NCBI GenBank assembly: GCA_965649825.1
Contig: OZ287708.1
Span: 77,101-141,100, forward strand
From: Penicillus capitatus
Lineage: Eukaryota > Plantae > Chlorophyta
Length of the DNA stretch: 64,000 bases
Direction: 5' to 3'
The notes under the pieces are model-generated. The model ran no database searches, was not told the origin of the DNA, and saw only the letters and a program-made list of their open reading frames with translations. Positions 5,841 to 62,517 of this stretch are shown here, piece by piece; position 1 is the first letter of the stretch; each line of letters opens with the position of its first letter. A program made the position numbers and the translations under genes.

Positions 5841-8800
5841 ATGAAGTGGGCTCTTATCATCATACTTCTCTTTGTTCATGCGTCCGACGAGGCTACGGAT
5901 ACAATAACCCTGTTTCAGACATGGACTCCGCGCATCAAAGAAATAGAGGAAGAAATTACGGCGCGTCTTATTGCTCCCGAGGGAAGAAGATGCGCCTGCA
6001 GTCATTTTGCTTGTGGTAAACGGCGAAATGGAGAATTAATGGAATGTCTACACTCTGGCCACAACGAGGACCTGCAATGTGCTTACAATGACTGTGGACA
6101 CATGGCTGTACGTTGTTTCTCCGTGGGTCAGTGTTGCAGCAATTTGCTTTTTGTGCTGTGCAGCTCAGCCTAAACCAGTCATACGTCATAACATCACCCT
6201 TCGCAGCAGGGGGCAGTTATGTGGATGAAATTAAGAGAGACATCTGTCTGACACAGGTGTTCCTCCACGTAATCGTTGCTTTGCAGACTTCTTCTTAGGG
6301 ACTGGAAGGTGCATTTCAAAGAGCAAGGGGAGAAAATCCGAAAGGATTTGTACCCTGGACTTACTTCGGTGGTTCAGAATCTGGAATCCATGTGTAATGT
6401 GCTTTTTGCCTTAAGATTTACTAATGCAGAGCATTCATTGGTTTCTAGAGGTTGGCCAGGGAAGCCACGAGAAGAGATTTCACCTGGAAAGTGTATAGAC
6501 TATGATCCAGTCAGCCATCCGAACTCCTGCTACGGATCTCTGTAGATGGATATATGTGTGATTAGAGAATTCGTCCTTGGTGGAGGAAAGCTGCTTGGCA
6601 TCCAAGAAATATCGTGATTCTCGTCGATCTTTCAGACTCGATGAAAGAAATTGTCCAAGGGACTAGTGATAAAACTAAGTGGGAGATGACTGTGAACATC
6701 ATTACACGCTTTCTGGAGACTCTGTCGGAAGAGGATGCAATTCAGATCATTGGTTTTAAGATGGTACCTGAGGTATTGATGGGTCAGGAAACAACGGTGC
6801 CTGCCACAAAGCGGACTGTCGAACAATTGAAGAGACGATTGGGACGGTTGAAACCAGATGGTGTGAAGTCTGTCGTGGACATCGGCAAAGCGATCGATCG
6901 AGCTATGAATTTGTTGTATGCCAATACGAACCCAGGAATCACAAAATGCGAAAACGTATCTCACTGCCATCTATCTATCTTTCTCGAGATAACTGCTGTT
7001 GTTTAGCACATTCTTTTGTTTTCAGACAGAAGGGACTGCAGTCATTCCATCGAACAAGATTGTGAATCTAAAAAGTATGTGTCGGAAGGCGGAATATCTG
7101 CGTCGCAGCCAGTCAACGCAACAATCGGTGTAGCAAGGCATATCATAAACATCCGGAGCCAGGATTCAGGAAGAACGAAACCGATCCTATTTACCTATAC
7201 GCTATCCCCCAAGGCAAACGGCATGTTAAGCCAGTTAGCTTGCCAGGTAGATGGAATCCATGTTGACCTTGTGCGTGAACTCAAAGGTGATCATCATCTT
7301 GATTGATATGTTTTGCATCCTCTGTTCGTCTTAGATAATCTGGATCCTTTGCATTTGATGCGTGGGTACTTTCGGAGATCGGCGCTGACAATTGCCGAGG
7401 TTTTCAAAGAGCCAATGGTCGCCGTCAGTGACTTGTACGAAGACGAATTTGGGTCGGGAACGATGAATACATTGGCAATGCCTGTATTCTATCGACCGCG
7501 TGATACATGCCCTCCAATTCATTATGGAGTCATTGGAGCAGACATGAGGATAAAGGAATATGCAGAGGAAGGAATTTCAGCCAACTCACCAAACTTCGAG
7601 TTCACTGTGTCTAACTGGAACAGCGATATCGCCGAATGCCGATCCGTCTTTGTTGATAAATGTCATCTCCAAGTCTTGAGAGAAGAAGAAGGACAGTGTG
7701 TTTACTCCCTCAAAAAACGCGAAGATAGAGTTTGTTACAAATTCAAGGACAGCATCTATCACATCGAAGATGATGAGCTCATGAGTCTGGACGAAGCCTT
7801 GAAGTATTGCCACGATCTCAATGGACGGATGATCGCACCGCAGGATCTGGAAGAGAGACGGTTTTTGGCAACATTGATCCCACCAGATGGAGCCTGGATC
7901 AATGTCACTAATGGCGAGGAGGATGGTTTCATGTGGAAGTGGCCAGATGGCAGTACAATCGAAATTGCAGAGAGAAAAAACATTGAACGCACCTGCGACT
8001 ATCCCCTTCCTGCAGGGTTCTACATGGATCCACGAAACTATAAAGACAATTTCCAATGTGTACAACGAATAAGAAGTCTAGCCACTGTGTGCCAGTTTGA
8101 CTCAGAACAAGAGCCGTCTATCTGCTTCAATGTCCGTGTCTGTTTGAGTCATAAGCAACTTAGGCTTGAATGGATTGTTTAGGGTGTGGCGACCGAAGAG
8201 ATCACGGAGGATAATTTCACGAAAACTATTCGCACATGTGAGATGGAGGACTGTCTGCTGGAATCGGCACGATTCAAAGACTATACCGATATGAAAGAAA
8301 CGGAAGTGTTGTGCAATCTCAATCTCTACGTTTCCACTAATTTCTCTGAAATTGGCTGTTGTTCAGAAGAAGACCTGATTTCGAATTGTGACTCGGTGAT
8401 GACATATATACATCATCACTGTACACGCATTTCTGATTGATAATGGTGGTTACAGGGAGTACAAGATATGGGAATCAACGTGACAGATAAGAGCGAAAGT
8501 GAATCGAGCAGTGGGAATGCCACTGTTGTCGTTGCCGTCATTGTTATGGTCATCGTGGTGGTGATCATCGTCACACTGTGCATCTGTTGTGCACGTCGAC
8601 GAAAGGCCTGTTTCGACAAGCCGGCAAACACGCACATGCCTTTGGGATCTTCAGAGTCCGATCACCGTCAATTTCAGATGATCAGAAGAGATCAGCATGG
8701 CACTCCTGGATCCATCCGAAGTGCATACAACATTCACTTGCAATAGAATCTAACGGTTCGTGCGCAGGTCCATTTGAAGTTGCCACGCCGAGCGCCGGAT

Positions 8801-9829
8801 TAATCGGAAAGAGACCGGAATTGGTGGTCAACATCGAAGTGAAGATTCTCGATAATGGATGGGAGAAGGTCGGAGGCTACGGCCGCGTACGACAAGGAGA
8901 GTATACGGACACCACAGGGAATGTGCACAAGGTGGCCGTCAAGTTCGTGGACGCATTGGCACCTAACGCCGCGTGGGAGGCCCTCAAGAACGAATTCGAC
9001 ATCCTGGCTTCCATTCCTCTCCATCCGAACATCGTCAAGCCCATCGGCGCCCACTGGGGGGACCGCACGGAAAACTCCCAGCGCTACATCGTCGAAGAGC
9101 TGATGCACACCAATCTTGGAGATCTGATGCGCGATACGAGTCCTCCACCCTATCCCGGAAAAAGCATGGTGTACAAGGACTGGATCAATATCTTCGTCGG
9201 CATCGCTCGTGGTCTGGAGCATCTCCACCAGCACAAGATCATCCACTTCGACTTGAAACCTAGAAACGTCCTCCTAGACGAGGACATGAACGCCAAGATT
9301 GCAGACTTCGGTTGCTCCAAGTCGAAGTTTGATACCTACATCGAACTCAGCAAAATGGGCGGAACTCCTCCGTACCTGGCACCAGAGTGCTGGATGCTCT
9401 ACTATGCGCAGAATGTCAGAACGGAGGTGGCAAGAGTCAAGATCGACGTCTACAGCTTTGGCGTGATCATGTGGGAGTGTTTAAACGGAGGGAACAGTTT
9501 GGCGACTGCGTTGTACAAACGCAAAAGCACGACATCTCCTCAGGCCTCTGCCAATCCGGACAACATCGAAATTGTCCGCGAGAGCCGTTCGTCTGGTAAG
9601 CAGCCAAGTGATAGACCTATCAGTGTTCTTCACCTTCTCTTCTGATGTAGAAGGAAACCAGCAGTGGGAGATCCAGTACTATCTCAGCGATGAGATCCCT
9701 GAAGGCTTGAGGAACTTGGTCACACAGTGTGTCCGTGTCGATTTTGATTCCCGTCCGACATGCGAGCAAATTCTGGATACGCTTGAGCCCATGCTGAAAG
9801 AAGAATGGGCAAACCATCCAGTTCCGTAG
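5841..9829 (+). CDS. Receptor-like kinase copy 1: signal peptide, alpha2delta-like VWA_N/vWA, Cache-like, C-type lectin, TM, non-RD protein kinase (multi-exon)
   Basis: Signal peptide [15 protein letters not shown]. Spliced [29 protein letters not shown] (alpha2delta-type YDPRxRPW plus DxSxS MIDAS). Cache-like [77 protein letters not shown]. Kinase [24 protein letters not shown]. Stop TAG at 9829. Confidence 0.88.
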
Positions 9830-10037
9830 TACTGACATCGTTAAATGTATTGCGACATTGGACTCGCTTATTGTACTGATTTGTTAGATAGGTCGCCTAT
9901 CTCTCTTGTGCGGTACCAATACAATGCAGAGTGGAAGGGACTTTTCTAGTGACGAACGGGCAAATTAGGTTCATGTGAAATAAGGCGACAGTAGTTCACT
10001 CTGGCTTTGTTAAAGAATGGATGTTTGACAAATGTCG

Positions 10038-12018
10038 TCAAACATGGAAAATGACGCTTGTGATTCTGTTATTCAGTATATCCTTCGGATCGAATCTTCT
10101 GCGCTCGCTGTCTGCCTTCTCAATAGGATACTTGTGACTCAATTGCCCCTTTAAGAACATAGGACTCAGTCGATCGATCTCTAATTTTCCCCAGTGCCAT
10201 GCTCCCTTGTACTTTGGCAACAGAATCGTTTCCACTTTCTGTGCGTATTCTGTAAAACTAGATACACACGTGAGTCATTCATATCGGATCGGCGAAGAGT
10301 CTGTTCTTACCTGGCCGTAATGCTCTGACGAACTCTGGGATCATCAGTCGGGAGATAGAGAATGATGCCGACCCAACAATGGACACTATCATCGACAGTT
10401 GCATTGTAGACAGGACTGAGAAGTGAACGACTGCTTGATGTCCATCGTTGTTCGATTGGCGCATGGGCTGGTATCCTGTGTTGCTTGATTTGATTCATGA
10501 CGTCTTGCATGAAGTCCAAATCGACCAATGATGGTTTAGACAGATTTCCTGCTGGAAACGCAACTTCAAGGACCCACTGTTGACCACCGCAATCAAACCC
10601 CAGAATCTGATCACTCCAACCCACGCGGAATCCGCTGGACTTCTTCCAGTAGTCTTCCTCAGCCTTGTTCACCTTCTTCAACCATTCCAGATCCAATGGG
10701 GCTTCTTTGAGCGCAACATCTCGGAGAGCTGCAAAATTCAGTTCCTCTAGTTGCTCGATTGTGTAATCGCCAACTTTCCCGTCGACGGCCCTCGTCCTGA
10801 TAAGCGAGCGGAAAGCTTGGGTCTGTTGTAAGGGCGTGTTGCTTGGAGCTGTGGACCGCGGGACATTAAAAGCTGTCAAAGGGTTACTCTGCACCACGAC
10901 AATACTGTCTGTGTACGGAATCCACATGTATCGCAGATGGCGATTCTCGGCCAACCACCTTTAACCACCACACCTCAGCACTTGTGTCCAACCGATGTCG
11001 CGATCAGCATACCTTGCATGATTTTTCTTCACTTCTCTAAACGTCGATACAAAAGTGTGTTCGACCAGTTTGTGTTCGGCGACGCACTGAAGTGTGACCT
11101 CGGTCAACACTCCGAAGCACCCGAGGCCGACTCTCGTTAGATAGAAGAGTGTTGGATCGGGGTCATCTTTTGACAGTTCAATGGTCCCCATTCCCGGCGT
11201 GATCATCCTCATACTGATCACCTGTTCATCCACTGGCGGGATCTTTGCACCTGTACCATGAGCACCGATCTGATCCAAACAATCTTCACCACGAACAGGA
11301 TATGTGATCAACAGACCTGAACAAATCCTCCAATCTGTTGTTCTTTGATGGAGGCGTAGTTTTGTAGAGTGAGTCCATATGGCCGAATGGCTTCGACCAC
11401 TGTCTCGACCCGAGCTCCGCACTGAAGCCGAACCTACTCGGTAGTAACCCAATGCCGATTTCTCTCTTTTTATCATCGTATTGGTCAATACCTGTCGCTT
11501 TTCAGAATCTACGTGGAGGATCTTGTCCATGAGCGACATGTTGAGCATCGTCTGGTTAGTGAAGGAAATGCCATTTGGGGATAGACCAGATCCGACGACC
11601 CTCAGTTTCTGGCCTCTTGCGTGACACTCCTTCACAAGCTTCTCGATTTCTTTCTCACTCTCTGGGGTCATACATTTCCTAACAGTATCCAAAATCAGAT
11701 TCTATTGGCGGATGATCGCGTGTTTTACCAGGGTGTAACCTCATGCGTGTGAGACCAGTTGACAAACGTTGTTTGATCTTCGACTTGAGAGAAACGATCT
11801 GTGAGTCCCCAGTACAGAGCTGTGACTCCAAGGCCGCCCAATGTCGCGATCGCAAGGCGTTGTGCTGTCTTGCTACTGACAACGGGACTCACTTCCGCAG
11901 TTGCCTTCGCCTCACGTGCTTCTGCAAAGCCACGTCCTTTGCAGCTTCGGATAGCGAGTGCACATCCGCTTGACAACACGTTCCGACGTGTGCCACGTGC
12001 CGCACGTACAAACATCAT
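10038..12018 (-). CDS. GLDH: L-galactono-1,4-lactone dehydrogenase, mitochondrial (multi-exon)
   Basis: Arg-rich presequence plus anchor helix; NWSHTHEV, LRVVGSGLSPNG, QIGAHGTGAKIPPVDEQV, ILGFDCGGQQWV, IPAHAPIEQRWTSSSRSLLSP, HWGKLE, DPKDILNN are all typical plant GLDH motifs. Confidence 0.95.
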
Positions 12019-12065: not shown

Positions 12066-14054
12066 ATGCAGCGCGTATCGGAAGAGATTGAATTCGACTC
12101 TGTTTCGGACGTCTACTATGTCCAACGGCAAAGCTGGGCAGTATGTCACGTTCTTTTCCGTTGCTCACTCTCATATCTCCTCAACAGGTTGCCCAGCACT
12201 ACACTCTTCACAGAGTCATCGGCAGCGGCAGTTTTTCCTGTGTCTGTCTTGCGACCTCCAAGATTACGAATGAGAAGGTTTGGCTGCAGAGTAATGTCAG
12301 GAAGGTGGCTGTCTTGAGAGAGCGTGCATGCAGGTCGCGTTAAAACGCATTCCAGATGTGCTTCAGAGTACCGAGAATGCCAAAAAGGTTCTCAGAGAGC
12401 TGTGCATTCTTCGTCGACTCTCGCATCCCTACTGCATTTCTGTCAAGCATGCCTTTGTCATGCCTTCTGACACAGGTCACTGCATTGCCTTGTTTAACGA
12501 GGGTGTGTGCTGGATGCGTGGGGTGCAGGAGCTTGGAAATTGCGAGGGGGTGAGCTGGTTCCTTGCTCGATCGATTTGTACTTAGCTATGGAATACGCTG
12601 GAGGAGGTGATTTACATAAACTGAGAGGCCAGCTCTCGGAGCACGATGTCCGACGCTTGATGTGGCAGATTTTGACAGCCGTGGAGTATCTGCATTCCCA
12701 GAATGTCTGGCATCGAGATCTGAAGTCTGCTAACGTGTTGCTGACAGTGGAGAATGGACAGCGAGTCTGTAAGATCGCAGATTTTGGATCAGCACGATCT
12801 GCTGTTTCGCATCCTTTGTTGAGAGAGTCTGGTCTGTCAAAAAGACAGAGCTCATGCAGTATTACCAATATGGATGAGGCCATTGCACGTTCATTGAAGA
12901 CAGTGGACCAGTCCTTGACACGTGCTGTGTGCACCCCCTGTTATCGTGCTCCTGAAGTGGTCATGTCTCGTGGGGGATACACCAGTGCTTTGGACATGTG
13001 GTCTGTTGGCTGTATCTTCGCCGAGCTTCTTCAGCGGATCTCTTACGTGGGATCTGCTTCCACTCCGCAACTGAAGGTGTCTCCTGTCTTTTGCGTGACA
13101 GGATTTCCAAAGACACCGTTGAGTGGAGAACACTACGAAGCTGGACCTGGAAACCCTACCACACGTTCTGAACTCGAGGCGCTGTTTCAAGTCATCGGCA
13201 CGCCTGCCTGGGCCTGCATTGAGGCAGTGGATTCGACGGCATGGAAGAGATACCTGCGAAATCTGCCTCTGAAAGCGGGCACACTCCATCGACGGTTTGG
13301 CTACGCCGGTGAAGTGGCAGTGGACCTCTTGACTCGATTGCTGACCTTTGATCCAAGTCGAAGGTGTTCGGCACGAGAAGCCATGCTGCATGAATACTTA
13401 AAAGAATTTTGGTGCCCCTCGAAGGATGCAGTGTCTCTGTCAGAGGATGGAGAATTCACATCGACCTCTTCCCTTTTTGAGCCAGTGGATGATATGGAAG
13501 ACGATCTGCCAGCAAACAACATCATTACCTCGCATTACCACGAACTCGAGAACCCTTCAAAGGCATTGAAGGCGTTGGAAGAAGAGATGGTACAGATCTG
13601 CAGTGATAAGAAAGGATGCGATCAGCTTCAGTCTCTTCTCGAGAAGGAATGCGAACTCTTGGCAGAATCTCAATCCCGAAAACTGGGAGCCGCGATATCT
13701 GGAAAGTACGGCGATGTCACAGAAGCTCTTGCCAGAAAATGTATGAGAGAAGGACCGTCTGAATTTGCAAAGCTCTTGGAGGAAGGCCTGGTCGCGGATC
13801 CAAACTGTGACAAATCCATGACGCCAGAGAGTTTTGGCCCGGGTCGTTTGCCTCACGTGGCAGATTTTTCAAAGGCGCATCTCGACGTGGAAAAACATTT
13901 AGCAGTAGGACGGCAGCAGGAATGGACAGTGACATCTGGATGTGGACCGATTACCGTGAACTATTGGGGAGTGAGTCTCGTTCCGCCTGGATCCGATGAA
14001 GCAACGATGGATCCAGAGATGAAGAAGATCATCCGCAGCCAGCAGTTGAGATAG
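12066..14054 (+). CDS. MAPK-like (CMGC) Ser/Thr kinase lacking a TxY motif (multi-exon)
   Basis: Spliced MQRVSEEIEF..YTLHRVIGSGSFSCV, VALKRIPDV, KKVLRELCILRRLSHP, WHRDLKSANVLL, DFG, LTRAVCTPCYRAPE, DMWSVGCIFAELL, AVDLLTRLLTFDPSRR. Confidence 0.88.
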
Positions 14055-23108: not shown

Positions 23109-26100
23109 ATGAGCTCCTCTTCTTCTGCACGATCTGTTCGAACAAACTCTGCCCATAAGCCAAAGAAGAAAAACGTCACGCGCCGAGCGCCTCTGAAAAA
23201 AACAGCAATAGAAGAAACGCCGAAGACCAACCAGGAGATCTCGATTGAAGACTTTCGCATTTTAGAACAGATAATAGAAAGGGCAGAAGAGAGTACAAGA
23301 GCGAAAGCATCAATGAACCGACAGCGTAGGTCTCGTTGAGGCAAAGCAGGTCGTTCAGGGACAATGCTATTACAGGACCCGTGGATCTCAGTTCAATTCT
23401 GCGTAGCTACGATATCGTCCTGAGACAAAACGGGCAATCCCCTGAAGAAGACACACAGTTCTACTGCATGCTTCTCAAAATGAGTCTGGATCCGGAGACG
23501 GATTGGAAAACGAAACTCGCAAAAGAACGATGCCAGTTATGCAGGTATCTTCTTTCTTTGCCGTTATCGATCGGCATCTCTGGTCGCACAGTTCTCATCT
23601 AAAGCAGTCATCTGAAACGTCATCTGCTTCCTTGAGCTCTCTACAGGAGACGGACTGTTCTATCCGGACGTCGTCAACGTCCAAGAGCGAGATTTCGTCG
23701 TTCGGTTTAACGATCTCGACCGTTTCGCAACGAGAGACGGAGGAATCGTTGGATGCAACGGATGTGACGCATGACACATCATTTCGCGCTCTGGCGTATA
23801 GATTTCGCCGATGGAGAGCACAGACATGCGATTTCGGACACGATCGGTTCGAACACCGTTGTGCGGAGTGCTGCTTTGACGTGTGGATGGCAGACGGGTC
23901 AAAGAAGAGGCAGACGCCAACCAAATCTTGGCTGAGTCGTTCTGGGAATACCATGCAAGTGCAAGAACGTTTCATCTCTGGTGGATGAGAGAAGCGAAAC
24001 TCCTGGCCGATGCACTGCAGTACTGGAACGCACGTCGGATGTCGAGTTGCGCCGCCAGATGGAAAGAGCATGCGGCATACAAACAGTTGACAAAACGGAC
24101 GGCCGTGATCTACAAGACCGAGCTGTATTTGAGGAAGGGATATGAAGCGTGGGTTGTAGAGGTGCGACACAGGAACACACTTAAGCCCCTTGCCATTGAG
24201 CAACACGTCTTTAATGTCAAGTAATGATACACAACCTCTGGCTGTCCGATGCACTTCTCTGTAGGAAAAGGACATTGTTACATTGGAGAGGGCACGCGAG
24301 GAAAGAGATTCGACTTGGGCAACAATTTCTTCTGGTGCAAGAGACGGTCGATCGGCATGACGTGGCATTCTTGTGGGAGGCGTGGAGGCGAAAGTGATGC
24401 TAAAAATTCAGCCGGATTGTGTGAGGGCTGTATCTTGAATGCAGGTACCTGTTGCAGCTGCGTCATGCTGACCTTCTGGGACAGGCTTTGTTGAGAATCG
24501 GCCAATGGAGAGCTTCTTGGGTACTGTCTGCATGGAAATGCTGTGTGGAAGAGAGAAAGCGTCGAGCCAGTCAGGTCTTGCATCCTCTTGACGATGCAAA
24601 GGGCAAAACGAATGATCCTTGCAGATCTTCCAAGCTGTGACATTGTGGAAGAGGTCGATAACGACTCGGGCATTCGGGCAGTGGAGAGGCTATACAGATG
24701 AGAAACAGTTGGTAACAACCAAAAATCGATTGTGACGGTTCCATCATGGAGAGCTACAGGAACGGAGCAAATGTATGGCCTATCTCGTGCGAATTCATCG
24801 CCGAGAGATATCCGCTGGGTTTGTTGCGTGGACATGCTATGTTGCCAAGAAGAAGAATGTTAAGCTACGAGTCCAGAAGGCTGCTGCATTCCTACTAGCA
24901 AATTCACAGGTAACACGTTCAATGCCTTGCTAAAATACATCGCACTGGACGGGTTGCTATACAGTCGAAGGCTTGGAATTCGTGGATTGCTTACCACAGA
25001 AGGAAGCGTCGAGAACGGAATCTACAGATCAGGTGTTTTCAGTTATTTGAGAGGAGGTAATTTCGCCCCTTACCCGTACGGTACATTCAAGTCATCCGCT
25101 GCTGCAGATCACTTATTATCTGTTTGGCCGATTGGAGAGCGTCTACTCAGGAGAGCTTAAATGTCAAAGAGGCATGCCAATGCCTTTTGCAGAAGACGAG
25201 GGATCGTTTTTTGAGTCTCGCGCTGCAAGAATGGCACAAATACATTCAACGGAAAACTTGGAATCGCTGTGTGGTCGAGACACGTGTTGCAAAAATGAAA
25301 ACAAAACTGATCTGCGCGGCTTTTCATGGATGGAGAGACAAGGCATCGCACTCTGGTAAACTGAAAGCAGATCTGTCTCGCTTTGCAGCAAAAACGCAAA
25401 ACACTTGTTTGGAAAAAGCATTCGAATTCTGGAGATGGTACACCCTCGAGAAGAAACGTTGCAAGTAATCTCCCTTGACAAAAGGAACTCACTGAATTCA
25501 CGAAGCACGTGTAGGGAGCTCCTATGTGGATGCCTGGAGAAGCTTAACAAGCGATCTCTTTCTGTCATGTTTGTCAATTGGAGATGCGCATCCATTGAAG
25601 CCATGCGACTCGCATGTGCAAACGATCACCTTTCAAAGTGCTGATGTGGTGTGGGTCACTCGACAAGAGATGTTTTACAGGTGTTACGAAGAAGAGCTCA
25701 TCGTCAGCGCTGTGCAACGATGGAAGGAGATGCATTTCAAGGAACAACGTTTCAGACAGGCTGCGGAATTCTTCGCTCATTCATCACTTATCGGCATCTT
25801 TCTAAACTGGAAGGTATATCTTTCGGTGATTACGGGACGCGTCATATCTATACCATGGGTTCGGATGTAGTCCGTTGTTGTTTATCAGAAGGAAAAGCGC
25901 TTTTGTCTAATGGCTATGAAAAGCAGAAAACTCGTTGCCTCCTTTCATTCGTGGAGAGACTGGGTGCGGTACAGAAGCGATGTGCATGTCAGACTGAACC
26001 AATGGTCGTTGCATTAACATGGATCAGTTAAATTTAACGTTTCAAGTGCTTTTAGCGTGCAGCGCCTGAAGCAACGGACAGTGTGCTTTACATTCTCAAG

Positions 26101-29100
26101 TTGGCAATCATGGGTCATCGCGCAGAAATTCAAACAGGCCTCTCTGCATAAGGCCATGACAATGCGACACCACCACACAGAGAAGAAGGCATGGGTCAGT
26201 TGGCGAGAGTGTATTTCAGAGAGACAGCAAAAGGGAGAGAAACTCTTTCGTGCAATTGTGCAGTGGGAAAATGCGACACTGCATAAAACCATACAGACCT
26301 GGAGAGAAGACGTCTGGGAGACGAACAAAGTTCTCAGCCACAAGTTAACATCGTTGCTGAAGAGATGGACAGCCCAGATTCTCTGGAGAACGTTAAATCA
26401 ATGGACACTCTATGCAGAGTACGAACAGACGAAGAGAGCTCAATGGGATTTGGCCGAGTCCTATGCGAAACGTCGCGTCTCTGCAACGGTTATCAGAGGA
26501 TGGATACAGATACTGGACGAGGAACAAACACTGCAGTCCGTTGCGCTGGAGTTTTTCGAGGGTCTGCTGCTTAGAACGAGGAGGAACTGTTTGAAGCAAT
26601 GGTACGATTACCGACAGAACAAGGAACAAGAGAGAAGAATGCTTGGCTATGCTATGGCGCGTTTTGTGTGCAAACGACAGTCGATGTGTTTTCATGCTTG
26701 GCGAGAGGCAATTCCGCTGCTACAGACACAGAAACAAAAATGGTTCCTAGCACTGTCGCACAGTGTTGGATGGCAACAACGGGCGATATTCACTGCATGG
26801 AAACAGTTTGTGTCGTATCAGGGGCAGTTAAGATCTCAGATAACGATCTACGTCAAGAGATGGCAGCAGTGCAAACTCCGAACAAGCCTTTTCTGTTTCA
26901 GGTCTATTGTCATTTAGTCGAGTCCAGAGTCATGATCTTGGAATTAGGTGTCATGTTGAATGGCGGAAGGTGAAAAGACGTGTCGTCGATGTGTGGATGC
27001 ACACCACTGAGATACGTGTGTTTCATGGCTGGAAAACATATCACTTGAACATGCGCACTCTACAATGCTGCTTGATAACGGCGGCGGAAAAATGGCAATG
27101 GAAATCCGCCCAGACTGTCATTCAGGAATGGAAGTCCTATGCCGTTTGCCAACAGAACAAGCGCCATAATCTGGACAGGTAATAAAGAGCCTGTTGCGGA
27201 TAGCCTCATCATCTTTTTCCACTTAGGGCCATGATTAAATGGACAGCGAGTTATCAGTCCAGAGCATTTAATGCTTGGAGGGAATATCACGTGTCTCGGA
27301 AGAACAAAGCGCATCTCTGCCTTGTTGCCTGTTGGCATGCCTCTCGAGAACTTGAGCGTCGTTGGCTCAGAAGCTGGCGACATTACAGCTCGCGGTCACG
27401 GCAAATGCAGCACGCGATGTTCAATGTCTCTTACATGTGGCGGTGTTGTCAGCTACGGTTGGCTCTCCGATATTGGAAGTGAGGAGAGATTGATCCATCT
27501 GTCTACTCTACAAACGGCGGTTCTGCAACAGAGAACGAGGGAATGACTGCCGAAACTCCCAGATTGGAGAAGAGTTCTGCCGAGGCCGTCGTCTCGCCTT
27601 TGCATTCCACTACTGGATCGAGTTAACGCTGTACAAACAGTACATCCGAGTGACACTGCAAGAAAGGCAGTCCGTCCGAGAGCACAGGATTCAACACATG
27701 ACCCTTTCCACTTGGAGGCATCTGACCCAGGACACTGCAAAACAACGATCCCTTCGTCAGGAAGCACTAGCGGGCGTGCGGCAATTGCATGCAGCTGCTG
27801 TGATTTCAGTCTGGATGGAGAAAAGCTGCTACTACAAGACACGGCAACAAACAATCAACAGTTTTACCTTCCGAATTGCACAGTGTGTCAAGGGACACGT
27901 GGTTGTTGCATGGAAGGAGTACACTACTTATCGGCAAAGTTGCCAAGCGAAGATGCATCAACTGCAGGACCGGATGTCCTTGCACCTTCTCTCGTCGGTT
28001 TTTGTGGGATGGAGGGAAACGGTAGGTATCCGGAAAGAACGCCAGAGAAAACTGGGCATAGCATTGAAGAGAACGCAACACGCGTCGCTGTCTCATGCGT
28101 TTGTTTCGTGGCGATCTTGGGCAGAAGAAGCTTCTCGGTTGACCACATTCTTCGCCCGGAGGCACCAGAATCTAATGAAAGAGATGCTTCTGCATTGGCG
28201 CAGTTGGTCGCATTATGACCGCGATCTGAAAAACAGATGCACATGGTTTCTCCGTCAGACTCAGCTCCGTGATCTCTCAAGCGTTCTCTCGAGCTGGTAC
28301 TTCTATGTCTTATATCGCCAAAACCTGCAGTCTGTGCTGAGCGACGCCTATTCAAAGCGCGAGCACTGTATGATGGAAACAACGTTTTGGGCATGGCAGC
28401 GTCACACAGAGGAGGCGAGAGCACGTGCACAGAAAGTTGAACAATGTCTGACGGCGAGGGGGCATCATCAGCTAGCGTCTTCCCTTCATTTCTGGATCCT
28501 TTTTGCTGGATACAGGCAAGAACTCAGATCCAAGGAGCTATCTATCCTGGAAGGGTCGCAAAGAAGAAGGCAGTCGGCGTTCTTCGTATCTTGGAGAGAG
28601 TACACTGAGTATGTGCGATGGATTCGGCCACGATTGTCGTCTTTCTCTATGATTCTCCAACGGAAATACATCCACCGAGTGTTTGCAAGCTGGCAGAGTT
28701 TTGTCATATGCCAAAGTGGAGCTCGTTGTATTTTGTTCCACATCAGAAGTCGCACAGTGATGGATAGCTTCCGCTCGTGGTTAGAGATAACGCAATGGAA
28801 TCGAGATCTTCGAGCTAAACTCAGCATCTGTATGGAGAATCTTCGAAAGAGAACGTTGTGCGTGGACTTTGGACATTGGAAGGCGTATGCATCGCAGAGA
28901 ATCGTACAGAACTGTAGGAAGAGAAGTGCAGACGAGCACTACGTCCAGACCAGTGTACATAAGGCATTGAGAGAGTGGTTGACAAGGTGCCGAACAGAGA
29001 AACGGGTTCTGGCATTTTGGCCCAGGCGAACGACTGCTAAGGTCCTGTCCATCAGTTACCGTGCAGACATACCCACTCATCTGTCTTTGCTGTTCAGGTC

Positions 29101-32100
29101 TTCTCAAACTGGAAACTGTACTGCGTATATCGCCAGAGATGTCGATTCCTAATGGATGTGATCGGCCGAAATCGGGCATCGAGACTCACGCAATCCGTTT
29201 TCTATTCGTGGAGTTATCACAGTAACCTGATGAAGACATCTCGAGAGGTAGGCTACGTATTCTGTCCAATGCCCATAGATCTCTGATGCGCATTTAGGTG
29301 TTCACTCATGTACAACACAGAGTTCTGTACAGATGCATTTGTGACTGGAAGACGCGATTCGAAGAGCTAAAGGAGAAGGGAGCCTTGACAGAGAAAGCCA
29401 CGTCCTATTGCTTAAACACGACTCTCGGAAAAACATTCCATCATTGGCACGAATGCACTCAGTATGCCATACACAAGCAACGCGTTGAGACAAACGCCAT
29501 TCGATTTCGCCTTCATCGCACACTCGAGTGCGCTTTTCGTGGATGGGGAATGTTTTATGTGTCCGCTGTCGAAAAGCAAGACCATATTGCAAAGGCAGTT
29601 CAACATTGGCGAATTTGGACACTTTTCTCCTCCTTTACTGAGTGGAAGGAGTACAAAGACGCATCCTCAGACAAACGGCGATGCACAGAAATGGCCATCC
29701 GTTGGTGGCACTGTGTGTCAACAGCATCGTGTTTCCGAACGTGGTATACATGTTTGGAGATCCACCGAACAGAGATGGACCGACGTGAAAGAGCCATCTC
29801 GCTGTGGATCCGAAATCTCGAACGAAGAGTTTTCTGCTATTGGGCCATGTTCCTTCAGAATCGACGCTACAAACAGTATATCACACTCGAGGCTCGACAG
29901 TTCCGGAAGAATCGGCAGATGACTTTGGCCTTTCATTCGTGGCAACTCGTCTGGCAAAATGCTCAGAAGAAGGTGATCGCGATTGGCCAAGCAATGCACT
30001 TCTGGCAAATGCATGCCCTTCAAAAAGGCATGTGGGGATGGCAAATGGGTGCGGTGAATTCTCAAATAAAACGCATGACGATCACAAGGGCGTTTTCTCT
30101 TTGGAGGAGTACCTATCTATCCAAGACGTTCTCGCATTGGAAAGGCTACACATCTTACAACTGTTTACTCAGGAGCCGCCTAACATCGAGTCTGCAGTTC
30201 ATGGAAATGCACGTGGCACAAACAACAATCGAAATGTGGAAAATATTCACCGTCCATTCGCTAATGAAGAAAGAAAGAATAACGTTGGCACTGCAGATGA
30301 TCAGGAAGCATCTTCAGTTAAAGGCTTTGAATGCCTGGATGGAATACGTCGATGATCGCCAAGTGAAAAGGCAGAACCTCGAAGCTGCCACACATCTGTG
30401 GCGCAATGCTATTGGACAGAAGGCGTGTCGAACGTGGAAGAGTCTAACAGCAGAACATGTGCAACTGAAAGAACTCCGACAGATGCTTCTACAGACATGG
30501 CAGCACAAGAAGCTGATGGAATCGTTTAGCGAATGGAAGGTGCCCAGCTAAGAAGCTCCTGGATTGGTGTGCTGAACTTTTTTGATCATAAGGTGTACAC
30601 GAATGGAAGACAAGAAACGAAAAACCGGCTCGAGGGATTCATCGCAAAGTTGACAACGGAGCGAATGTGGAATGCATTTGAAGTTCTGAGACAGTACCGT
30701 GAACAAAGAGTGCATAAGCGAATGGCTCTTCGACACTGGGAAGATACGATCCTGAGAAGGTAACCGTCAACACACTCTTCCGAAGCATCATGAGAGAAAT
30801 CCAGGTCCCTGGAGATCTGGCAAAGATATTCGGACGAACGCCGAGACAAGAAGACAAAATGCGAGATGGCGGCGCACTTCCTGTGGCATTACACCATGGC
30901 TTCTGCTTTTTGCGCATGGAGAGAGTATCGTTTTGACAGTGTTCACGGCAGAAAAGCACTGTTGTGGTGGCAACACTCCTCTCTTAAAGGTATGAGTAAT
31001 TCTGGATGCAGACATACGTCGAGAGACGGCTGCACAGGTGCATTTACGAAATGGGTGGAATACACGACGGAAAGGCAGAACGAAGCTGATCAAACAGCGA
31101 ATTCCCTTGCTCACTGGATGAACCAGTCAATGTCCCGAGCCTTTGAAAAGTGGATGGTGTACGTCGGCCAGAGACAGCGTCGCATGATTCTTATCCAAAA
31201 TGCGATCGCACATTGGGAACAGAACACCTTTGCCAAAGTGATGCTTAACAGAGCGAACACGATGTGCCACAGGGTTGGCTTTTCAGGTCCTTCTGACGTG
31301 GATCGAGTATGCCACTGCTGTACAAGAGAAGAGAGAGATGGTATGGCGTTGCGTACAGCGAATGTCCAGTCGCAAAATGACAATGGCTTTTACCTATTGG
31401 AAGGCGGTTGTGGAGAACAAGACATCCCTGAGACAGATTCAATGGGAATGCTCCATGCGGTTCAGCAGTAAGATGCTCGCCACGTCCTTTGCCGCCTGGC
31501 GAGAGACCACTGACTGGAAGATCTACAAGAGACATGTGTGATGAGGTCCATACAACACGGATCCCCATGACGGTGACATGGATAGGTCATATGGCAGAGT
31601 CTCTGCCGACTGAGGCGAAGACAGTTGTCGGAGGGTTGGAATCAATGGCGATCGTTTGTCGCGTGGAGAGAAAAGAAAAGATATGCCCAATGGCTCTCTG
31701 AAAACAAGAGGCGGCAATGTGCCTTTATCTCTATGCAGTACTACACACACCTGAAAAACGCGGAACACGATCTCCAAGCAAAGAGAAATGCAAGGTCGCT
31801 CAGAAAAGTGCTCACGTGGTATTGGAACGCTTTCTGAATTAGGTTGAAGTGCAAGGCATGGGAGGAATGGATGCGTTCTGTTGAGGATTGGCGCCTGCAA
31901 TGCATCCTTGCAGAGAATTGGCGGCTGGAGAAAGCCCACGAAAAAATGATGGACCCCAAAGGGGTCGTCTTGTATCACTGGACTGTTCATTTATCGTTGG
32001 CCAAATCCGTAGCTGCATTACGCGGCAGAGTCTGCACCAGCAGTCTTCGAGCGAGGTTCTTTGTATGGAGATACCATACTGAGCTCTTGCCAAGACTCAG

Positions 32101-35113: not shown

Positions 35114-37729
35114 TCAGTAGTTGCTGCCATTCTTTCGATGGTGCACTGCTGAGACGTCGCCTTTGTTTAGCACCTCCCCGCCTTCGACCGTTGCGTAGAC
35201 GATCCAATGATCTCCAGCTTCCATGCGTTCCTTTACTGTACATTCCACATAGGATACGGCATTGTGAATGACCACACAGCCTGTCTCTTCGCACACCTGT
35301 CACATCAATCATTCAACACACGACTCTCACGATCCGTCAGGAGGCGACACCTCAGTGACGAGGCCATCAAATCGATTCTGACCAGGATTGAAGGGCTTGA
35401 GCATATGTTTCATGATATCCAGTTCTTTTCCTTCTGCAAGGATATTCACATTGAAACGATTGCCCTCGAGTAAGACGTTCTCGACGGCACGATCGCGTTT
35501 GACAGCGATGGTGAGTCCAGGTGGATTGAAACTTGCTTGCGATACCCAGCTGGCCAACATGCCACTCTCTGCATCGCCGTCTTTGCCACTGATGACACAC
35601 AGAGATCCAACGATGCGACCAACGGCTTGAGAAGCGTCTGAGGCGGTTCGAGAACGCGACACGCCGATGGATTGCTTTTCACGTTTCTTTAGATTCTTCT
35701 CGACTTCTTGAGCCAAATCTGTGCCGCTCTCTTCGCATACTTGGAGATCCTGTAGATATATAGAAAGGGTATATGTGGAGTGTATGGATGGATGTACTTT
35801 GGCGGTCGGCTTCATTTTGACACGGATGGCATCGAAAGCAAATTTGAATCCGGCATCTCTCAGACGTTGCTCCATCTCGTCCACAGCCTCACCACTCCAC
35901 CCAAAGCTTCCAAATACACCACAAGGCAACTGTCTCGCCTGTGTATTACCGACGATTAACCCCAGGACTGTCTGAACCTGCGTCGGCAGGTGACCCCCAA
36001 GTGTCGGGCTCCCTTCACAAAGAGCCGTGTCAACCACGAGGGTGTTAGTGTAAAAAGCATACCGATGATGAATCCATCAATTTCGCCGAGCGCCTTTTCG
36101 ACGTCCGACAGTTCGGATGTCTCCAAATTGAATGTTTGGACTCCTAGTCCACTCTTCTGCATACCGTGGCTGATGGCCTACATCTCTGTATGTTGACGGT
36201 CCATGCTTCTGAACTCTGTCTCACCTGAGCAAGAGCAGCAGTGTTGCCATAGGCACTTGCATAGAACACAGCAATGGTGCCTTTTGTACTGCTCTGCTTC
36301 TTGATCCACTCGGCATAGTTCTCAACGAGTTCGTGTAGTGAATTTCGCACAACGGGGCCGTGCATTGGACAGATACCCGCTATTTCCCGTATCGCTTCTT
36401 CTTTCTCTTCCGTCTCCGATGCAGCAGGGGTCACCCACGACACCAGTCGACCAAACCAGTCCTGGATCGCTGGCAGCATTGAAGCAGATGCCGTTGAGAA
36501 GTTCAGTTGTTCCAGAGCTTTGGCGACCTGTAGAGCTGATGGCGCCAGCATGGTTTCAAAGAAATACTGCCAATCTGTCCCATACGTCTGCCATCCTCCG
36601 ACATCGAAAGCTGTATCCTGAACACATTGCCCCAGATCAAACCTCGTAAAACTCCGAAAGTGACGAAACAGATACCTTCACTTCTGTCAGTTCAGATGCC
36701 ACATGAGCAGAGAAGAGTTCAGACGAGAACAGAATCTTGCGTTGGGGAATGTAGATGGCAAGCATGTCTGGCCATCGAGGTGTGGCAGTCCGAATAAACT
36801 CAAAGTCCATATTCTCAGCAATCTTGATGGAACCACCAATTGGCGCCGCCATCAGTGTGCACTTGTTATAGATATCCGATTCTGTTCCCTCGTTATCTAA
36901 TAGCCAAAACAGAAGACAGTTGTGGGCGTGTGCCGTTCCAGTCATGCAAAAGGAGTTTGTTACCAAATGCGTTGCGCAAGAAACGGATTGCAGCAGCACT
37001 GGCAATGATATCAACTGGATTTGATCCATCTGCGTCGATCAAATGGATCAAAGATCTCAAAACGGGCAATGCATCGGGTTGAAGATGCGTAAGAACGATT
37101 TTGCCAATCCTCTTCGCCGCAATCGTTTTCTGCAGCGTCAAAACTTCACACATGAAGAAAGCACTCAGAAATGAACGCCGTTGTGATATCAGATGTACGA
37201 AAAGGAGATGAAAATGGCTCCGATGGTACATCGATGAGGACAGTCGCCTCTCGAGTGGCTCCCTTCACGAGATAAGCATTCTCAGTCGTGCCGCGTTTTC
37301 TCCCATACTCCACTTCGAATTTGAGACGCTCGAGACAGCTGCTGCGAATCGCCACCAGCTCAGAAGACACTTCGAATACTGATGCATTCCCCATCTGCTG
37401 TACCGCTCCTTTCTCCTGCACCACCCGAGTGCCCTCATGACTCGCCGGCAGTGCCGACGGCGGCTCACTTGTGTCGTTATCGACGACGTAGCTTCGCAGA
37501 CAGGATGGGACAAAATCGATCGCACACGCGAAAACTGTGGCTGAAAAGGAAGGGCGGCACCGTGCCGTGCAGGTGGCGTGTTTCGCGTTCCCGTGCGTTC
37601 GAACATTCCCGTCTTCGCCGTTCTCATTCGTTCTGCCGAAATCTGAGGTGTGATCGACGTTGTCGTCATCGTCTTGGACCAAACCGGAACGGTACGGCAG
37701 ATACACGTCTGCCTTCGCTGTCGCCTCAT
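35114..37729 (-). CDS. FLVA: Flavodiiron protein, FLVA type (beta-lactamase-like + flavodoxin + flavin reductase), multi-exon; start 37729 or 37669
   Basis: LKFEVEYGRKRGTTENAYLV; non-canonical THLQPDA in place of HxExDH; YASAYGNTAALA, GSPTLGGH, GVFGSFGWSGEAVD, MLASWVSQASFNPPGLTIAV, EAGDHWIVY, AVHHRKNGSNY*. Confidence 0.92.
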
Positions 37730-58574: not shown

Positions 58575-61500
58575 ATGAAGTGGACATTGTTGATTATATT
58601 GCTGTCCGCTGGTTCGTCCTGCCAAACAGTGGACACAACCAAGTTCTTTGGAAAATGGAACGATAAACTGCGCGATATCGCGGATGAAATCACGGCGCGT
58701 TTATCTGCAACCGAAAGCAGAAATTGCGAGTGCAGTTACTACGCTTGTGGAGAAAGGCCAGATAAAAACATAACGGAATGTCTCAAATCAGACCACAAAG
58801 AAAAACTGGTCTGCGGCGTCGATCCCTGTGGACATATGAATGTCTGCTATTCTTCAATGTGTGGGCGAATGCCAACTGTTTGCTTTGTAGCTCAGCATAA
58901 ATCGAACATTCGTTCGCATACCACCTTCTGCGACACCGGGCAGTTACGGCAACGCAATCAAGAGAGACATCTGCTTAACTCAGGTGCCTACATGCAGCGC
59001 TTTCACTTTGCACGACCTTTTTCAGGGTTTGGAAGACGCATTCAAAAATGCCAGAGATTACACGAGTGGGTTTGTTCCGTGGACTTACTTTGGGGCAGCA
59101 GAGGCAGGAATATTCGTGTACTGTGCATTTTGATGCAAATATGACATCAGAAAGTAGGACTGGTTTTAGGGGCTGGCCAGGAAAGCCGCGAGAGCAGGTG
59201 AAACTTGGAATATGTCGAGACTACGATCCAGTAACAATGATTTCTAGTGTTCACATCTCTCTAGACGAGTCTGTGTCTAGAGAGTTCGCCCTTGGTGGAG
59301 GCGAGCAGCCTGGCATCCGAGGAATATTGTGATTCTCGTCGATCTCACGACATCCATGAAGGACAAGATCCGAGGAACCGAGAAGTGGAACATGACTCTA
59401 AACATCGTTACACGCTTCTTGGAGACTCTGTCGGAGGACGACGCAGTTCAGATTGTGGGTCTGAAGAGTGAACCCAAAGTGCTGATGGGTCCGGACAGGA
59501 CGATGCCCGCCACGGAGCAGACTGTCGAGAGGTTGACAAACCGGTTGAGAAGGTGGGAACCCGATGAAGGCGACTCTGTTGTGGATATCGGCAAAGCGAT
59601 CGATCGAGCCATGGATCTGCTGCATGCCAACAAGGACCGAGGAATCACAAAATGCGAGAACGTATCCCACTGCCTTCTCTCTTTCTCGAGATGACTGTTG
59701 CTGTCTAGCACATTCTGCTGTTTTCACACAGAAGGGACTGCAGCCATTCCATCAAACGAGACTGCGCGTCCAAGATGTTTGTGAACGAGGATGGAGAATC
59801 CGTCTCTCGACCGGTCGAATCGACAATCGGCGTCGTGGAAGATATCATAGACAGGCAGAACAAGGATTCGCTCAGAAAGAAGCCAATACTCTTCTCCTAT
59901 ACCCTGTCCCCAAAGGCAAACGGCATGCTGAGCCAGTTAGCTTGCCGGCTGGATGGAATCCACGTCGATCTAGAGCGTGAGCTCGAAAAAGGTGGCATCC
60001 GGATTCACGTCAGAATACTCTTGCCATGAGTTGTATCTTCAGGTATCCTGGACCCTCTCCATCTGATGCGTGGGTACTTTCGAAGAGCAGCGTTGACGGT
60101 GGCCAATGCCACTGGAGGAAAGATTTCCGTAAGTAACATGTACAACGATGACTCTGGGTTAGGAAGAATGAACACGCTCACGATGCCGGTCTTCTATAAG
60201 TCGCATTTTGACTGCCCGCCAATTCATTATGGGGTCATCGGAGCCGACATGCGACAATCCGACTATCGAGCCAACGGAATTGTAGCAGATTCACTTAACT
60301 TCGAGAATGATGTATCTAACTGGAATGAACATGTCACAGAGTGCAAATCCATACGAGTCACTCGTTGTCATATGCAAGTCCTGAGGGAGAAGGAAGGGCA
60401 ATGCGTCTATCCTCTGGAAAAATCAGGAGACGAAAAATGCTTCGAGTTTAAGAAGCACATCTACTACGTCGAAGAAAAAAGAGCGATGAAGTTGGAAGAA
60501 GCCAAAGAGTACTGCCTGAGTCTAAGTGGGCAGATGATCGCACCGCGGGATGTTGAGGAGAGGCGTTTTCTGGCTACCTTGATGCCGCCGGACGGCGCGT
60601 GGATCAACATCACTCACGATGACGAGATCGACTGGAAGTGGCCAGACGGCGAACGACTTGATCCAGAAGAGAGGAAGAGCATCGAGCGCTCCTGCGATTA
60701 TCCCCTCCCTCCCGGATTCTACATGGACCCTCGAGACTACGATAACAACTTTCAGTGTGTACAACAGCTTGAACGAAAGACAGTCGTCTGTCAGTTCGAC
60801 GCAGGACAGATCCCGAAAGTTTGCCGATCCAACGTCGTGCTCTGCATTCTGGTATTTCGATGACGGTTTGTTTTGCTCCAGATTGTGGTGTCTGTCACAG
60901 AAGATGACTTCGTGGACACGATACGTACCTGTGATGCGGAGGACTGTCTTCTGACGAACATACCGTCTGATGGCTACACGTCGCTGCAAGAAACTGACAT
61001 ATTCTGCAACTGGAATATGTTAGTAGATAACGATTTCTCCAAAATTGGCTGTTGTTCGCCGGAAGACCTGATCAGGGAGTGTGACGCGGTGGTAACACGC
61101 ATCATTGTTGTAGTCTTTCGCAGTTGATGTGAGTGGTTGTAGGAAGTGAACGACATGGGATTCAACGTAACAAATGAGATCAAAAATGATTCCAGCAGTG
61201 GGAATACCACGGTTGTAGTTGCAGTAATTATTGTGGCCATCGTGGTGGTGATCTTAGCCACACTGTGCTTCTGCTGCGCCCGTCGACAAAGGTCCTCTTT
61301 TGACAAGCCGAGTCATAAGCCAATCCGTTTAGCCTCTGCGGATTACTTAAATCGCCGCCTTGATGTAATGATCGGAAATCGTTCCGGAAGACCTGGGTCT
61401 ATTCAAAGTACATGCAACATTTGCTTGCAACAGAATCTCAGTTTATGTGCAGGTCCATTTGCGGTTGCCTCGCCGAAAGCTGCTGGATCAATCGGAAAGA

Positions 61501-62517
61501 GACCGGAATTGGTGGTCAACATCGAGGTCAATATTCTCGACAATGGATGGGAGAAGATCGGAGGCTACGGCCGCGTCCGACAAGGGGAGTATACGGACAC
61601 CACAGGGAATGTGCACAAGGTGGCCGTCAAGTTCGTGGACGCATTGGCACCTAACGCCGCGTGGGAGGCCCTCAAGAACGAGTTTGACATCCTGGCTTCC
61701 ATTCCTCTCCATCCGAACATCGTCAAGCCCATCGGCGCCCACTGGGGGGACCGCACGCAGAACTCCCAGCGCTACATCGTCGAAGAGCTGATGCACACCA
61801 ATCTTGGAGATCTGATGATCGACACGAGTACTCCGTCTTATCCCGGCAAGACCATGGTGTACAAGGACTGGATCAATATCTTCGTCGGCATCGCTCGTGG
61901 TCTGGAGCATCTCCACCAGCATAAGATCATCCACTTCGACTTGAAACCTAGAAACGTCCTCCTAGACGAGGACATGAACGCCAAGATTGCAGACTTCGGT
62001 TGCTCCAAGTCGAAGTTTGATACCTACATCGAACTCAGCAAGATGGGCGGAACTCCTCCGTACCTGGCACCGGAGTGCTGGATGCTCTACTACGCGCAGA
62101 ATGTCAGAACGGAGGTGGCGAGAGTCAAGATCGACGTCTACAGCTTTGGCGTGATCATGTGGGAGTGTTTAAACGGAGGGAACAGTTTGGCGACTGCGTT
62201 GTACAAACGCAAAAGCACGGCATCTCCTCAGGCCTCTGCCAATCCGGACAACATCGAAATTGTCCGCGAGAGCCGTTCGTCTGGTAAGCAGCCAAGTGAT
62301 AGACCTACCAGTGTTCTTCATCTTCTCTTCTGATGTAGAAGGAAACCAGCAGTGGGAGATCCAGTACTATCTCAGCGAAGAGATCCCTGAAGGCTTGAGG
62401 AACTTGGTCACACAGTGTGTCCGTGTCGATTTTGATTTCCGACCGACATGCGGGCAGATTCTGGACACCCTGGTGCCTATGCTTGACGAAGAGTGGGCAA
62501 ATCATCCAGTTCCTTAG
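58575..62517 (+). CDS. Receptor-like kinase copy 2 (paralogue of 5841-9829), same vWA-Cache-CTLD-TM-kinase architecture
   Basis: [15 protein letters not shown]; [26 protein letters not shown]; same exon structure; kinase nearly identical to copy 1 (HFDLKPRN); stop TAG at 62517. Confidence 0.88.

Follow-up and report, generated by a model that had tools for sequence, protein, structure and literature searches.

Gene structure and domain layout

The window analysed here, 64,000 nucleotides (nt) of Penicillus capitatus contig OZ287708.1 (positions 77,101 to 141,100), carries on its forward strand a gene (coding region 5841..9829) that is predicted to encode a single-pass type I receptor protein kinase of 1162 amino acids (aa). 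A bacterial-style listing of open reading frames (ORFs) splits this gene into pieces across all three forward frames, and the gene model was built by joining such pieces by hand at canonical GT-AG sites. The resulting model has 11 exons, with exons 1-6 at 5841-6107, 6164-6256, 6299-6391, 6432-6509, 6566-6955, and 7007-7286, and exons 7-11 at 7335-8137, 8183-8395, 8456-8720, 8768-9595, and 9651-9829. From the ATG at 5841 to the stop codon at 9827-9829, it reads as a single open frame of 1162 codons without an internal stop, and its ten introns, all GT-AG, are 40-60 nt each.

The ectodomain and the kinase belong to one gene, because a homologous ORF runs uninterrupted across all ten intron positions. 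The closest database protein to the window receptor kinase, P0001 (42% identity in the ectodomain and ~80% in the kinase), is encoded by a single unbroken ORF of a 3.8-kb JGI contig (L001); extended upstream, this ORF reaches from a signal peptide of its own through the kinase. This ORF is continuous through all ten window splice junctions, for example SIR|SPFE between the transmembrane (TM) exon and the kinase exon, and SRSS|EG inside the kinase. The same architecture recurs in a second gene copy within the window (paralog 2), at a locus from a second metagenome (L003) that is syntenic with the window in having the same TPR gene upstream, and in Ostreobium quekettii CAD7697429.1. The alternative, that the gene model is an artefact in which ectodomain and kinase are separate neighbouring genes, or that the locus is a pseudogene, has a close to negligible probability in our view. 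Against it stand the frame, unbroken through ten canonical introns, the distance of only 47 nt between the TM and kinase exons (intron 9, 8721-8767), the continuous L001 ORF, the recurrence of the arrangement in paralog 2, L003, and Ostreobium, and the purifying selection on the gene described below. An earlier note on this DNA, made from the letters alone, had taken the gene as a single ectodomain-kinase unit, which the L001/P0001 ORF bears out. The features that it listed (signal peptide, YDPRIRPW, a DxSxS vWA, a C-type lectin-like domain, a TM helix, and an HFD kinase) are all present, at the positions that follow.

The product begins with a signal peptide (aa 1-16; 5841..5888), a hydrophobic N-terminus that paralog 2 and the extended L001 ORF have kept. 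It is followed by an N-terminal stalk helix (aa 18-44) and a Cys-rich insert (aa 49-100), together at 5892..6196 including intron 1, for which AlphaFold2 gives a helix over aa 2-44 and then short strands; the cysteines of the insert are conserved family-wide. The sequence YDPRIRPWW (aa 175-183; 6501..6583, i.e., 6501-6509 plus 6566-6583) is split by intron 4 (6510-6565) and aligns to LYDVRRRPWY of alpha2delta-1. Inserted into the Cache module is a VWA domain (aa 191-400; 6605..7285, including intron 5), identified by Pfam VWA_2 and by the alpha2delta-1 alignment. The positions of its metal ion-dependent adhesion site (MIDAS) are occupied by DLSDS (aa 198-202; 6626-6640), Val281 in place of Thr (6875-6877), and Asp314 (7025-7027). 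The C-terminal strands of the Cache (PDC) module follow at aa 430-472 (7421..7549) and include Y435 (7436-7438) and D470 (7541-7543), with AlphaFold2 strands at 443-453 and 462-472.

Next comes a divergent C-type lectin-like domain (CTLD; aa 534-656, 7733..8101) with DPR at aa 632-634 (8027-8035), supported by Pfam Lectin_C and by CTLD matches in the PDB. A Cys-rich, mainly helical stalk (aa 669-755; 8183..8503, including intron 8; AlphaFold2 helices 677-743, pLDDT 65-88) leads to the membrane and is also conserved in relatives without a kinase. The TM helix of 23 residues (aa 762-784; 8522..8590) is followed by a basic stop-transfer sequence, ARRRK, and by a juxtamembrane segment (aa 785-862; 8591..8871, including intron 9) whose SIR|SPFE junction is identical to the P0001 ORF. 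The protein kinase domain (aa 863-1146; 8872..9778, including intron 10) was delimited by Pfam Pkinase and PDB alignments, and its key residues are K886 (8941-8943), HFD (aa 987-989; 9244-9252), N994, DFG (1007-1009; 9304-9312), and APE (1032-1034; 9379-9387). On the spliced product, Pfam reports three domains, namely VWA_2 (aa 193-314, E 2e-9), Lectin_C (aa 549-650, E 8e-8), and Pkinase (aa 863-1146, E 2e-37). VWA_N and Cache have no Pfam match in the window protein even at E<=1, whether single ORF pieces or the whole model are searched.

Ectodomain fold, kinase, and a second gene copy

Because Pfam is silent on these two regions of the window protein, the assignment of Cache and VWA_N rests on PDB, profile, and fold evidence. 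When PDB sequences were searched with phmmer, the N-terminal half matched only alpha2delta-1 (E 7e-10, aa 114-315), in an alignment that spans the end of “VWA_N” and the first part of the alpha2delta-1 VWA domain. An AlphaFold2 model of aa 1-762, calculated from an alignment of 72 family sequences, reached a pLDDT of 85.7 and a pTM of 0.89. Its best match by Foldseek against the PDB was again alpha2delta-1 (7mix_D; E 9e-21, ~487 aligned columns, rmsd 4.8 A), and the next was CACHD1 (9eq6_A; E 7e-14), from a structure of the FZD5/LRP6 complex. The model consists of a long N-terminal helix, the small Cys-rich insert, one PDC-type sheet, three helices, the confidently modelled CTLD (534-656), and the helical Cys-rich stalk, with the sheet strands 141-168 and 443-472 flanking the VWA domain (191-400). 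The ectodomain is thereby modelled as an alpha2delta/CACHD1 type of fold, with a stalk helix and one Cache (PDC) module split by a VWA domain.

To survey the family, a profile of five members was compared, with no word index, with 1.84 billion cluster representatives, which gave 6738 proteins with a cutoff of E<=1e-3 and 620 representative clusters with one of E<=1e-30. By contrast, word-indexed homolog searches with the ectodomain gave 3-4 proteins only. Most relatives are 550-800 aa in length and span the stalk helix, Cache, and VWA; the CTLD is also covered in about one quarter of the best 150, and about two thirds of the relatives end in one TM helix and a short tail. Pfam finds in them VWA, MCP-like_PDC_1 or dCache_1 (the C-terminal part of those models only), and Lectin_C, sometimes together with a weak to clear match to VWA_N; the Cache and VWA_N matches fall at sites that correspond to these regions of the window protein. 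A genuine animal alpha2delta (VWA_N, dCache_1, VGCC_alpha2) was reached by the family profile at ~1e-62. The resemblance to alpha2delta/CACHD1 proposed in the earlier note thus holds in sequence, profile, and fold, and the Cache-like segment and VWA_N that it described are supported by phmmer, by the Pfam matches of the relatives, and by Foldseek.

Given the number of clusters at the stricter cutoff, the Cache+VWA(+CTLD) module is abundant outside animals. This contradicts a metazoan-only alpha2delta, whose homologs were stated to be absent outside animals (PMC4202318), and agrees with the report of single Cache+VWA proteins in most eukaryotic supergroups, protists included (PMC8915833). The window protein shares with alpha2delta and CACHD1 the N-terminal stalk helix, YxxxxRxW in the “VWA_N” region, a VWA domain inserted in the distal module of dCache_1, and the Y...D half of the amino-acid motif downstream of the VWA domain. 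Unlike those proteins, it has no second dCache_1/VGCC_alpha2 region (Pfam gives no match, and in the model the Cache strands are followed by helices and then the CTLD), shows no proximal Cache module, and adds the CTLD and the Cys-rich stalk. It ends in a TM helix and an active-looking kinase, whereas alpha2delta and CACHD1 end in a glycosylphosphatidylinositol anchor or a short tail.

The nearest description in print is that of a dCache_1AA+VWA Ser/Thr kinase reported from some members of the Streptophyta (Gumerov et al., 2022; PMC8915833). Compared by description only, the streptophyte kinases resemble the window protein in having one VWA-split Cache, an intact amino-acid motif, and a fused Pkinase, whereas CTLDs, chlorophytes, and non-RD kinases are not mentioned in that paper. 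Our literature search found no description of the CTLD and non-RD kinase version in chlorophytes. The kind of protein was anticipated in print; what sets the present gene apart is the (degenerate) CTLD and conserved Cys-rich stalk between sensor and membrane, the non-RD kinase, and the chlorophyte side. The earlier suggestion that this is not a described family therefore stands for the chlorophyte version with CTLD and non-RD kinase, but not for Cache+VWA kinases as such (PMC8915833), and the kinase-less form already carries an automatic annotation in Chloropicon.

The kinase domain has a complete set of catalytic residues (K886, D989, N994, DFG, and APE) and is apparently competent. Its catalytic loop, HFDLKPRN, is of the Ser/Thr type and non-RD, with Phe988 instead of Arg before the catalytic Asp, in agreement with the HFD of the earlier reading. 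The PDB neighbours of the kinase are of mixed kinds and score almost alike (SOBIR1, FERONIA, Pto, SYMRK, TNIK/MAP4K4, MET/RON, CaMKK2, and AMPK), and from these scores it does not appear to be assignable to the RLK/Pelle receptor-like kinases (RLKs). The closest kinases belong to the same receptor family, i.e., Ostreobium P0187 (HYD, DFT; 108 bits) and a partial environmental sequence, L007 (HYD). A scan of JGI metagenomes with the kinase exon likewise returned only the L001 contig and this one partial HYD kinase.

Paralog 2 (58575..62517, forward strand), found by tblastn and gene modelling, sits 52 kb downstream of copy 1 and encodes 1154 aa with the same 11-exon structure and domain order. 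The two copies are ~50-70% identical in the ectodomain and ~96-99% in the kinase. All 20 introns of the two gene models are 40-60 nt long, which is unusually short and uniform; the genome is ~49% GC. Ectodomain-coding DNA is 55-75% identical between the paralogs, with a synonymous divergence (dS) of ~1-1.7 and saturated synonymous sites in the CTLD. The ratio of nonsynonymous to synonymous divergence (dN/dS) is 0.13-0.49 in each region with an estimable dS, pointing to purifying selection on both window copies; diversifying selection on the ectodomain was considered and rejected, with dN/dS there at 0.13-0.39.

The 3' parts of the two genes are much more similar. Over a tract of ~1 kb on the forward strand (8780..9830 in copy 1, ~61460-62517 in paralog 2), DNA identity is 93-99%. 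This tract is confined to the kinase exons and intron 10; dS in the kinase is 0.15, intron 10 is identical at 53/55 positions, and in a sliding window identity drops to background immediately past the stop codon. Strong codon constraint was rejected as the cause of the near-identical kinases, since the similarity extends to the intron (96%) and drops off abruptly at the stop codon. The pattern indicates that gene conversion homogenised the kinase, leaving two old, differing sensors with one output domain.

A related copy in the second metagenome (L004; ERZ26696514, 4669-7190) has a stop right past the stalk and is without a TM helix or kinase. About 0.6 kb beyond that stop, the kinase end and 3' flank of the complete L003 gene (7690-12984) recur in inverted orientation at L004 7825-12987, with 99.5% identity. 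A segmental duplication with inversion, a difference between haplotypes, or a join made during assembly may explain this arrangement.

Ligand sites and candidate function

In dCache_1 amino-acid sensors, Y121, R126, and W128 (PctA numbering) bind the ligand carboxylate while Y144 and D173 bind the amine, and in eukaryotic dCache_1AA this motif is interrupted by the VWA insertion, with YxxxxRxWY lying within “VWA_N” and Y[x27-34]D beyond the insertion (Gumerov et al., 2022; PMC8915833). All five core residues are present in the window protein, as Y175, R180, W182, and Y435-[x34]-D470. They are also well conserved among 72 family members (Y175 in 57/72, R180 and W182 each in 68/72, Y435 in 66/72, and D470 in 69/72). 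Judged from its residues, the Cache pocket is the one classical ligand site clearly conserved in this receptor kinase. The earlier note had envisaged glycan or small-ligand sensing, and the intact motif speaks for the small-ligand part; the glycan part fares differently, as discussed later.

On balance, we lean towards a candidate small-molecule receptor, in which the Cache pocket senses an amino acid or similar compound and the kinase responds. A free amino acid or a similar small amine-carboxylate would bind the membrane-distal pocket, and such binding is to be expected because the pocket keeps the five residues that bind carboxyl and amino groups in bacterial dCache_1 sensors and in alpha2delta-1. 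Occupancy could be relayed to the kinase via the CTLD and stalk, or via ligand-dependent oligomerisation, and activation-loop phosphorylation would probably not be required in a non-RD kinase. The closest working analogues are the bacterial dCache_1AA Ser/Thr kinases, e.g., Enhygromyxa salina WP_106093935.1, which were shown to bind amino acids (PMC8915833). Like the window protein, they combine an extracellular Cache carrying the amino-acid motif, one TM helix, and a Hanks-type kinase, but they have a complete double-Cache with no VWA insertion or CTLD and are related to the window protein by domain only.

Several points weigh against such a ligand-gated receptor. At the accessory position of the motif (Y129), the kinase clade has Trp183 where 67/72 relatives have Tyr or Phe, and this may alter or block the pocket. 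The G-loop of the kinase reads KxGxxG, with its first Gly replaced by Lys. No membrane-proximal Cache module is seen in the AlphaFold2 model, so that the bacterial route of signalling from dCache to TM helix cannot simply be assumed. In addition, the main role of alpha2delta and CACHD1 is that of a protein partner to channels or Wnt receptors rather than that of a ligand-gated enzyme.

The second site to consider is the MIDAS of the VWA domain, which is eroded specifically in the kinase clade. At its Thr position both window copies and P0001 have Val, and its last Asp (Asp314 in window copy 1) is His in paralog 2 and Glu in P0001. By contrast, the wider family has a perfect MIDAS (DxSGS...T...D), kinase-less chlorophyte relatives usually do as well, and alpha2delta-1 and alpha2delta-2, unlike the window protein with its lost Thr, have a complete one. 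This site bears on the possibility of an alpha2delta-like, partner-binding co-receptor, whose ectodomain would dock on a membrane protein, such as a four-domain voltage-gated cation channel, with no small ligand needed. The kinase would then phosphorylate the docked partner or signal its presence (cf. alpha2delta on Cav and CACHD1 on Frizzled/LRP6). Such docking would be in keeping with the best structural matches, alpha2delta-1 in channel complexes and CACHD1 in the FZD5/LRP6 complex, and with the fact that most relatives are TM-anchored with short tails, as in alpha2delta and CACHD1. Cav-like alpha1 subunits exist in green algae (PMC4202318), and a kinase-less relative from Chloropicon primus, QDZ18890.1, is annotated as a “voltage-dependent calcium channel subunit,” although this annotation is automatic and not experimental. 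However, it is precisely the MIDAS, the channel-engaging site of alpha2delta-1, that is degenerate in the kinase clade, and the second dCache/VGCC_alpha2 region of alpha2delta is absent. We regard a co-receptor of this type as rather unlikely.

The CTLD has lost its classical site as well. The sugar motif EPN is changed to DPR in the kinase clade, and both window copies, P0001, P0004, and P0005 have lost the beta3-beta4 hairpin on which WND and its cysteine reside; because of these two changes, a canonical Ca2+/sugar site is predicted to be unable to form in the window CTLD. EPN/QPN and xND are retained in Caulerpa, partly in Chloropicon, and in some environmental relatives. These losses count against the glycan half of the earlier proposal and, more specifically, against a glycan-sensing pattern-recognition receptor (PRR) that, by analogy with plant PRRs and lectin RLKs, would bind a microbial or wound glycan through the CTLD and signal defence through the non-RD kinase. 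The CTLD itself is genuine, with a Pfam match at E 8e-8 and a good fold in the model, the kinase is non-RD, and two diverged ectodomain paralogs with one homogenised kinase would fit such a role. Siphonous green algae, to which the nearest named relatives belong, are also known for lectin-mediated wound responses.

On the other hand, the ectodomain dN/dS of 0.13-0.39 points to purifying selection, whereas immune receptors typically diversify; the kinase shows no specific likeness to RLK/Pelle; and non-RD status is a statistical correlate only, established in plants. Land-plant C-type lectin RLKs, such as cucumber CsTs, do share a CTLD ectodomain on a single-pass receptor kinase (PMC11489597), but there the CTLD is the sole ectodomain module and the kinase is RLK/Pelle, whereas here the CTLD is appended to Cache+VWA. 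Overall, we assign a distinctly low probability to glycan recognition, and the immune or wound role suggested earlier finds no support in this analysis.

VWA domains and CTLDs are common adhesion modules, and the family forms local gene clusters, both of which would suit an adhesion or self-recognition receptor in which cell-cell, gamete, or matrix contacts would be made through the VWA domain, CTLD, and Cys-rich stalk and be reported by the kinase. However, the usual adhesive sites, MIDAS and lectin site, are both degenerate, and the conserved Cache amino-acid motif would be left unexplained; the chance of such a function seems slimmer still. In the small-molecule receptor that we favour, the VWA domain and CTLD would more likely be scaffold or protein-contact surfaces than metal-dependent or glycan-binding sites, because both sites are degenerate in the kinase-bearing clade.

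It is possible, although we consider it doubtful, that in this green-algal clade the alpha2delta-type Cache+VWA is a true extracellular sensor of amino acids (or amine-carboxylates) wired to a kinase, a counterpart of the bacterial dCache_1 Ser/Thr kinases. If so, the ancestor of alpha2delta and CACHD1 would have been a ligand-gated signalling receptor and not a channel accessory, and the CTLD and non-RD kinase would be lineage-specific additions. The alpha2delta proteins are the targets of gabapentinoid drugs, and their Cache pocket binds amino acids, but the signalling meaning of this binding is debated; a natural coupling of an alpha2delta-type pocket to a kinase would let ligand-induced signalling through this fold be measured. 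To our knowledge, hardly any receptor kinase of green algae has a known ligand, and a candidate amino-acid receptor may be a starting point for studies of nutrient or microbe sensing in marine algae.

Distribution and neighbouring genes

The named relatives of the ectodomain are all Chlorophyta, namely Ostreobium quekettii, Caulerpa lentillifera, Bryopsis sp., Neomeris dumetosa, and Chloropicon primus. Nearly all relatives are without a kinase. Among the best 150 representatives, a kinase is present only in Ostreobium CAD7697429.1, and the fusion is otherwise limited to a few environmental sequences. The kinase-less proteins of Chloropicon (QDZ18890.1), Caulerpa (g7067-g7071), Bryopsis sp. (GMH32949.1), and Neomeris dumetosa have the same ectodomain module, mostly with a C-terminal TM helix. 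Family copies tend to cluster locally, as in Caulerpa g7067-g7071, the two copies in the window, and L003/L004. The Caulerpa lentillifera genes g7067-g7071 (P0279, P0002, P0280, and P0126) form an apparent tandem array of four proteins over five consecutive gene numbers, with no kinase. Members of this array keep the EPN...LND sugar-site motif that is lost in the kinase-bearing clade.

The Ostreobium protein (CAD7697429.1; UniProt A0A8S1IUP3; 1077 aa, “unnamed protein product”) is colinear with the window protein over ~1030 aa, sharing VWA, Cache, CTLD, stalk, TM helix, and a non-RD (HYD) kinase with a similar juxtamembrane “...LxNGW” lead-in. The two genes have at least four ectodomain intron positions in common, which indicates shared ancestry of their ectodomains. 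The Ostreobium protein differs in its low identity (~26%), in having DFT instead of DFG, and in the intron positions within the kinase, and its introns are long (up to ~1.6 kb, in a gene spanning 11.8 kb) compared with 40-60 nt in the window gene. The deposited CAD7697429.1 looks N-terminally truncated, as matches to the stalk helix, Cys-rich insert, and “VWA_N” lie upstream of its start (L005 676-897, 2909-3034, and 3166-3240).

The neighbouring genes in the window are eukaryotic and include those for GLDH, a CMGC-like kinase, UFD1, a giant Sfi1-like repeat protein, a flavodiiron-type protein, a DEAD-box helicase, and TTL and TPR proteins. The algal origin suggested in the earlier note is plausible, given that the named relatives of the receptor are all Chlorophyta and that the window holds a flavodiiron-type gene and a plant-type GLDH. 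The latter, L-galactono-1,4-lactone dehydrogenase (10038-11701, reverse strand), has environmental sequences as its nearest matches (57-63%), while named ones, from land plants, Botryococcus, Enallax, and Rhodosorus, reach ~45-55%. The gene at 35330-37805 (reverse strand) encodes flavodoxin and flavin-reductase domains, like the C-terminal part of a class-C flavodiiron protein, a type that is typical of cyanobacteria and the green lineage and hints at a photosynthetic organism. The CMGC/MAPK-like kinase gene (12498-14051, forward strand), with a normal HRD and a long C-terminal extension, is unrelated to the receptor kinase. No rRNA, other Rfam family, or tRNA was found within the 64-kb window. 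A run of long ORFs at ~25000-34500 (forward strand) with Trp- and Arg-rich repeats (W..W spacing) constitutes one very large gene, and its repeats resemble those of an Sfi1-type centrin-binding repeat protein. Near the start of the window, at 245-1898, lies a satellite-like tandem array with a 25-nt period and a 78-nt higher-order unit, in ~64 copies with 76% matches.

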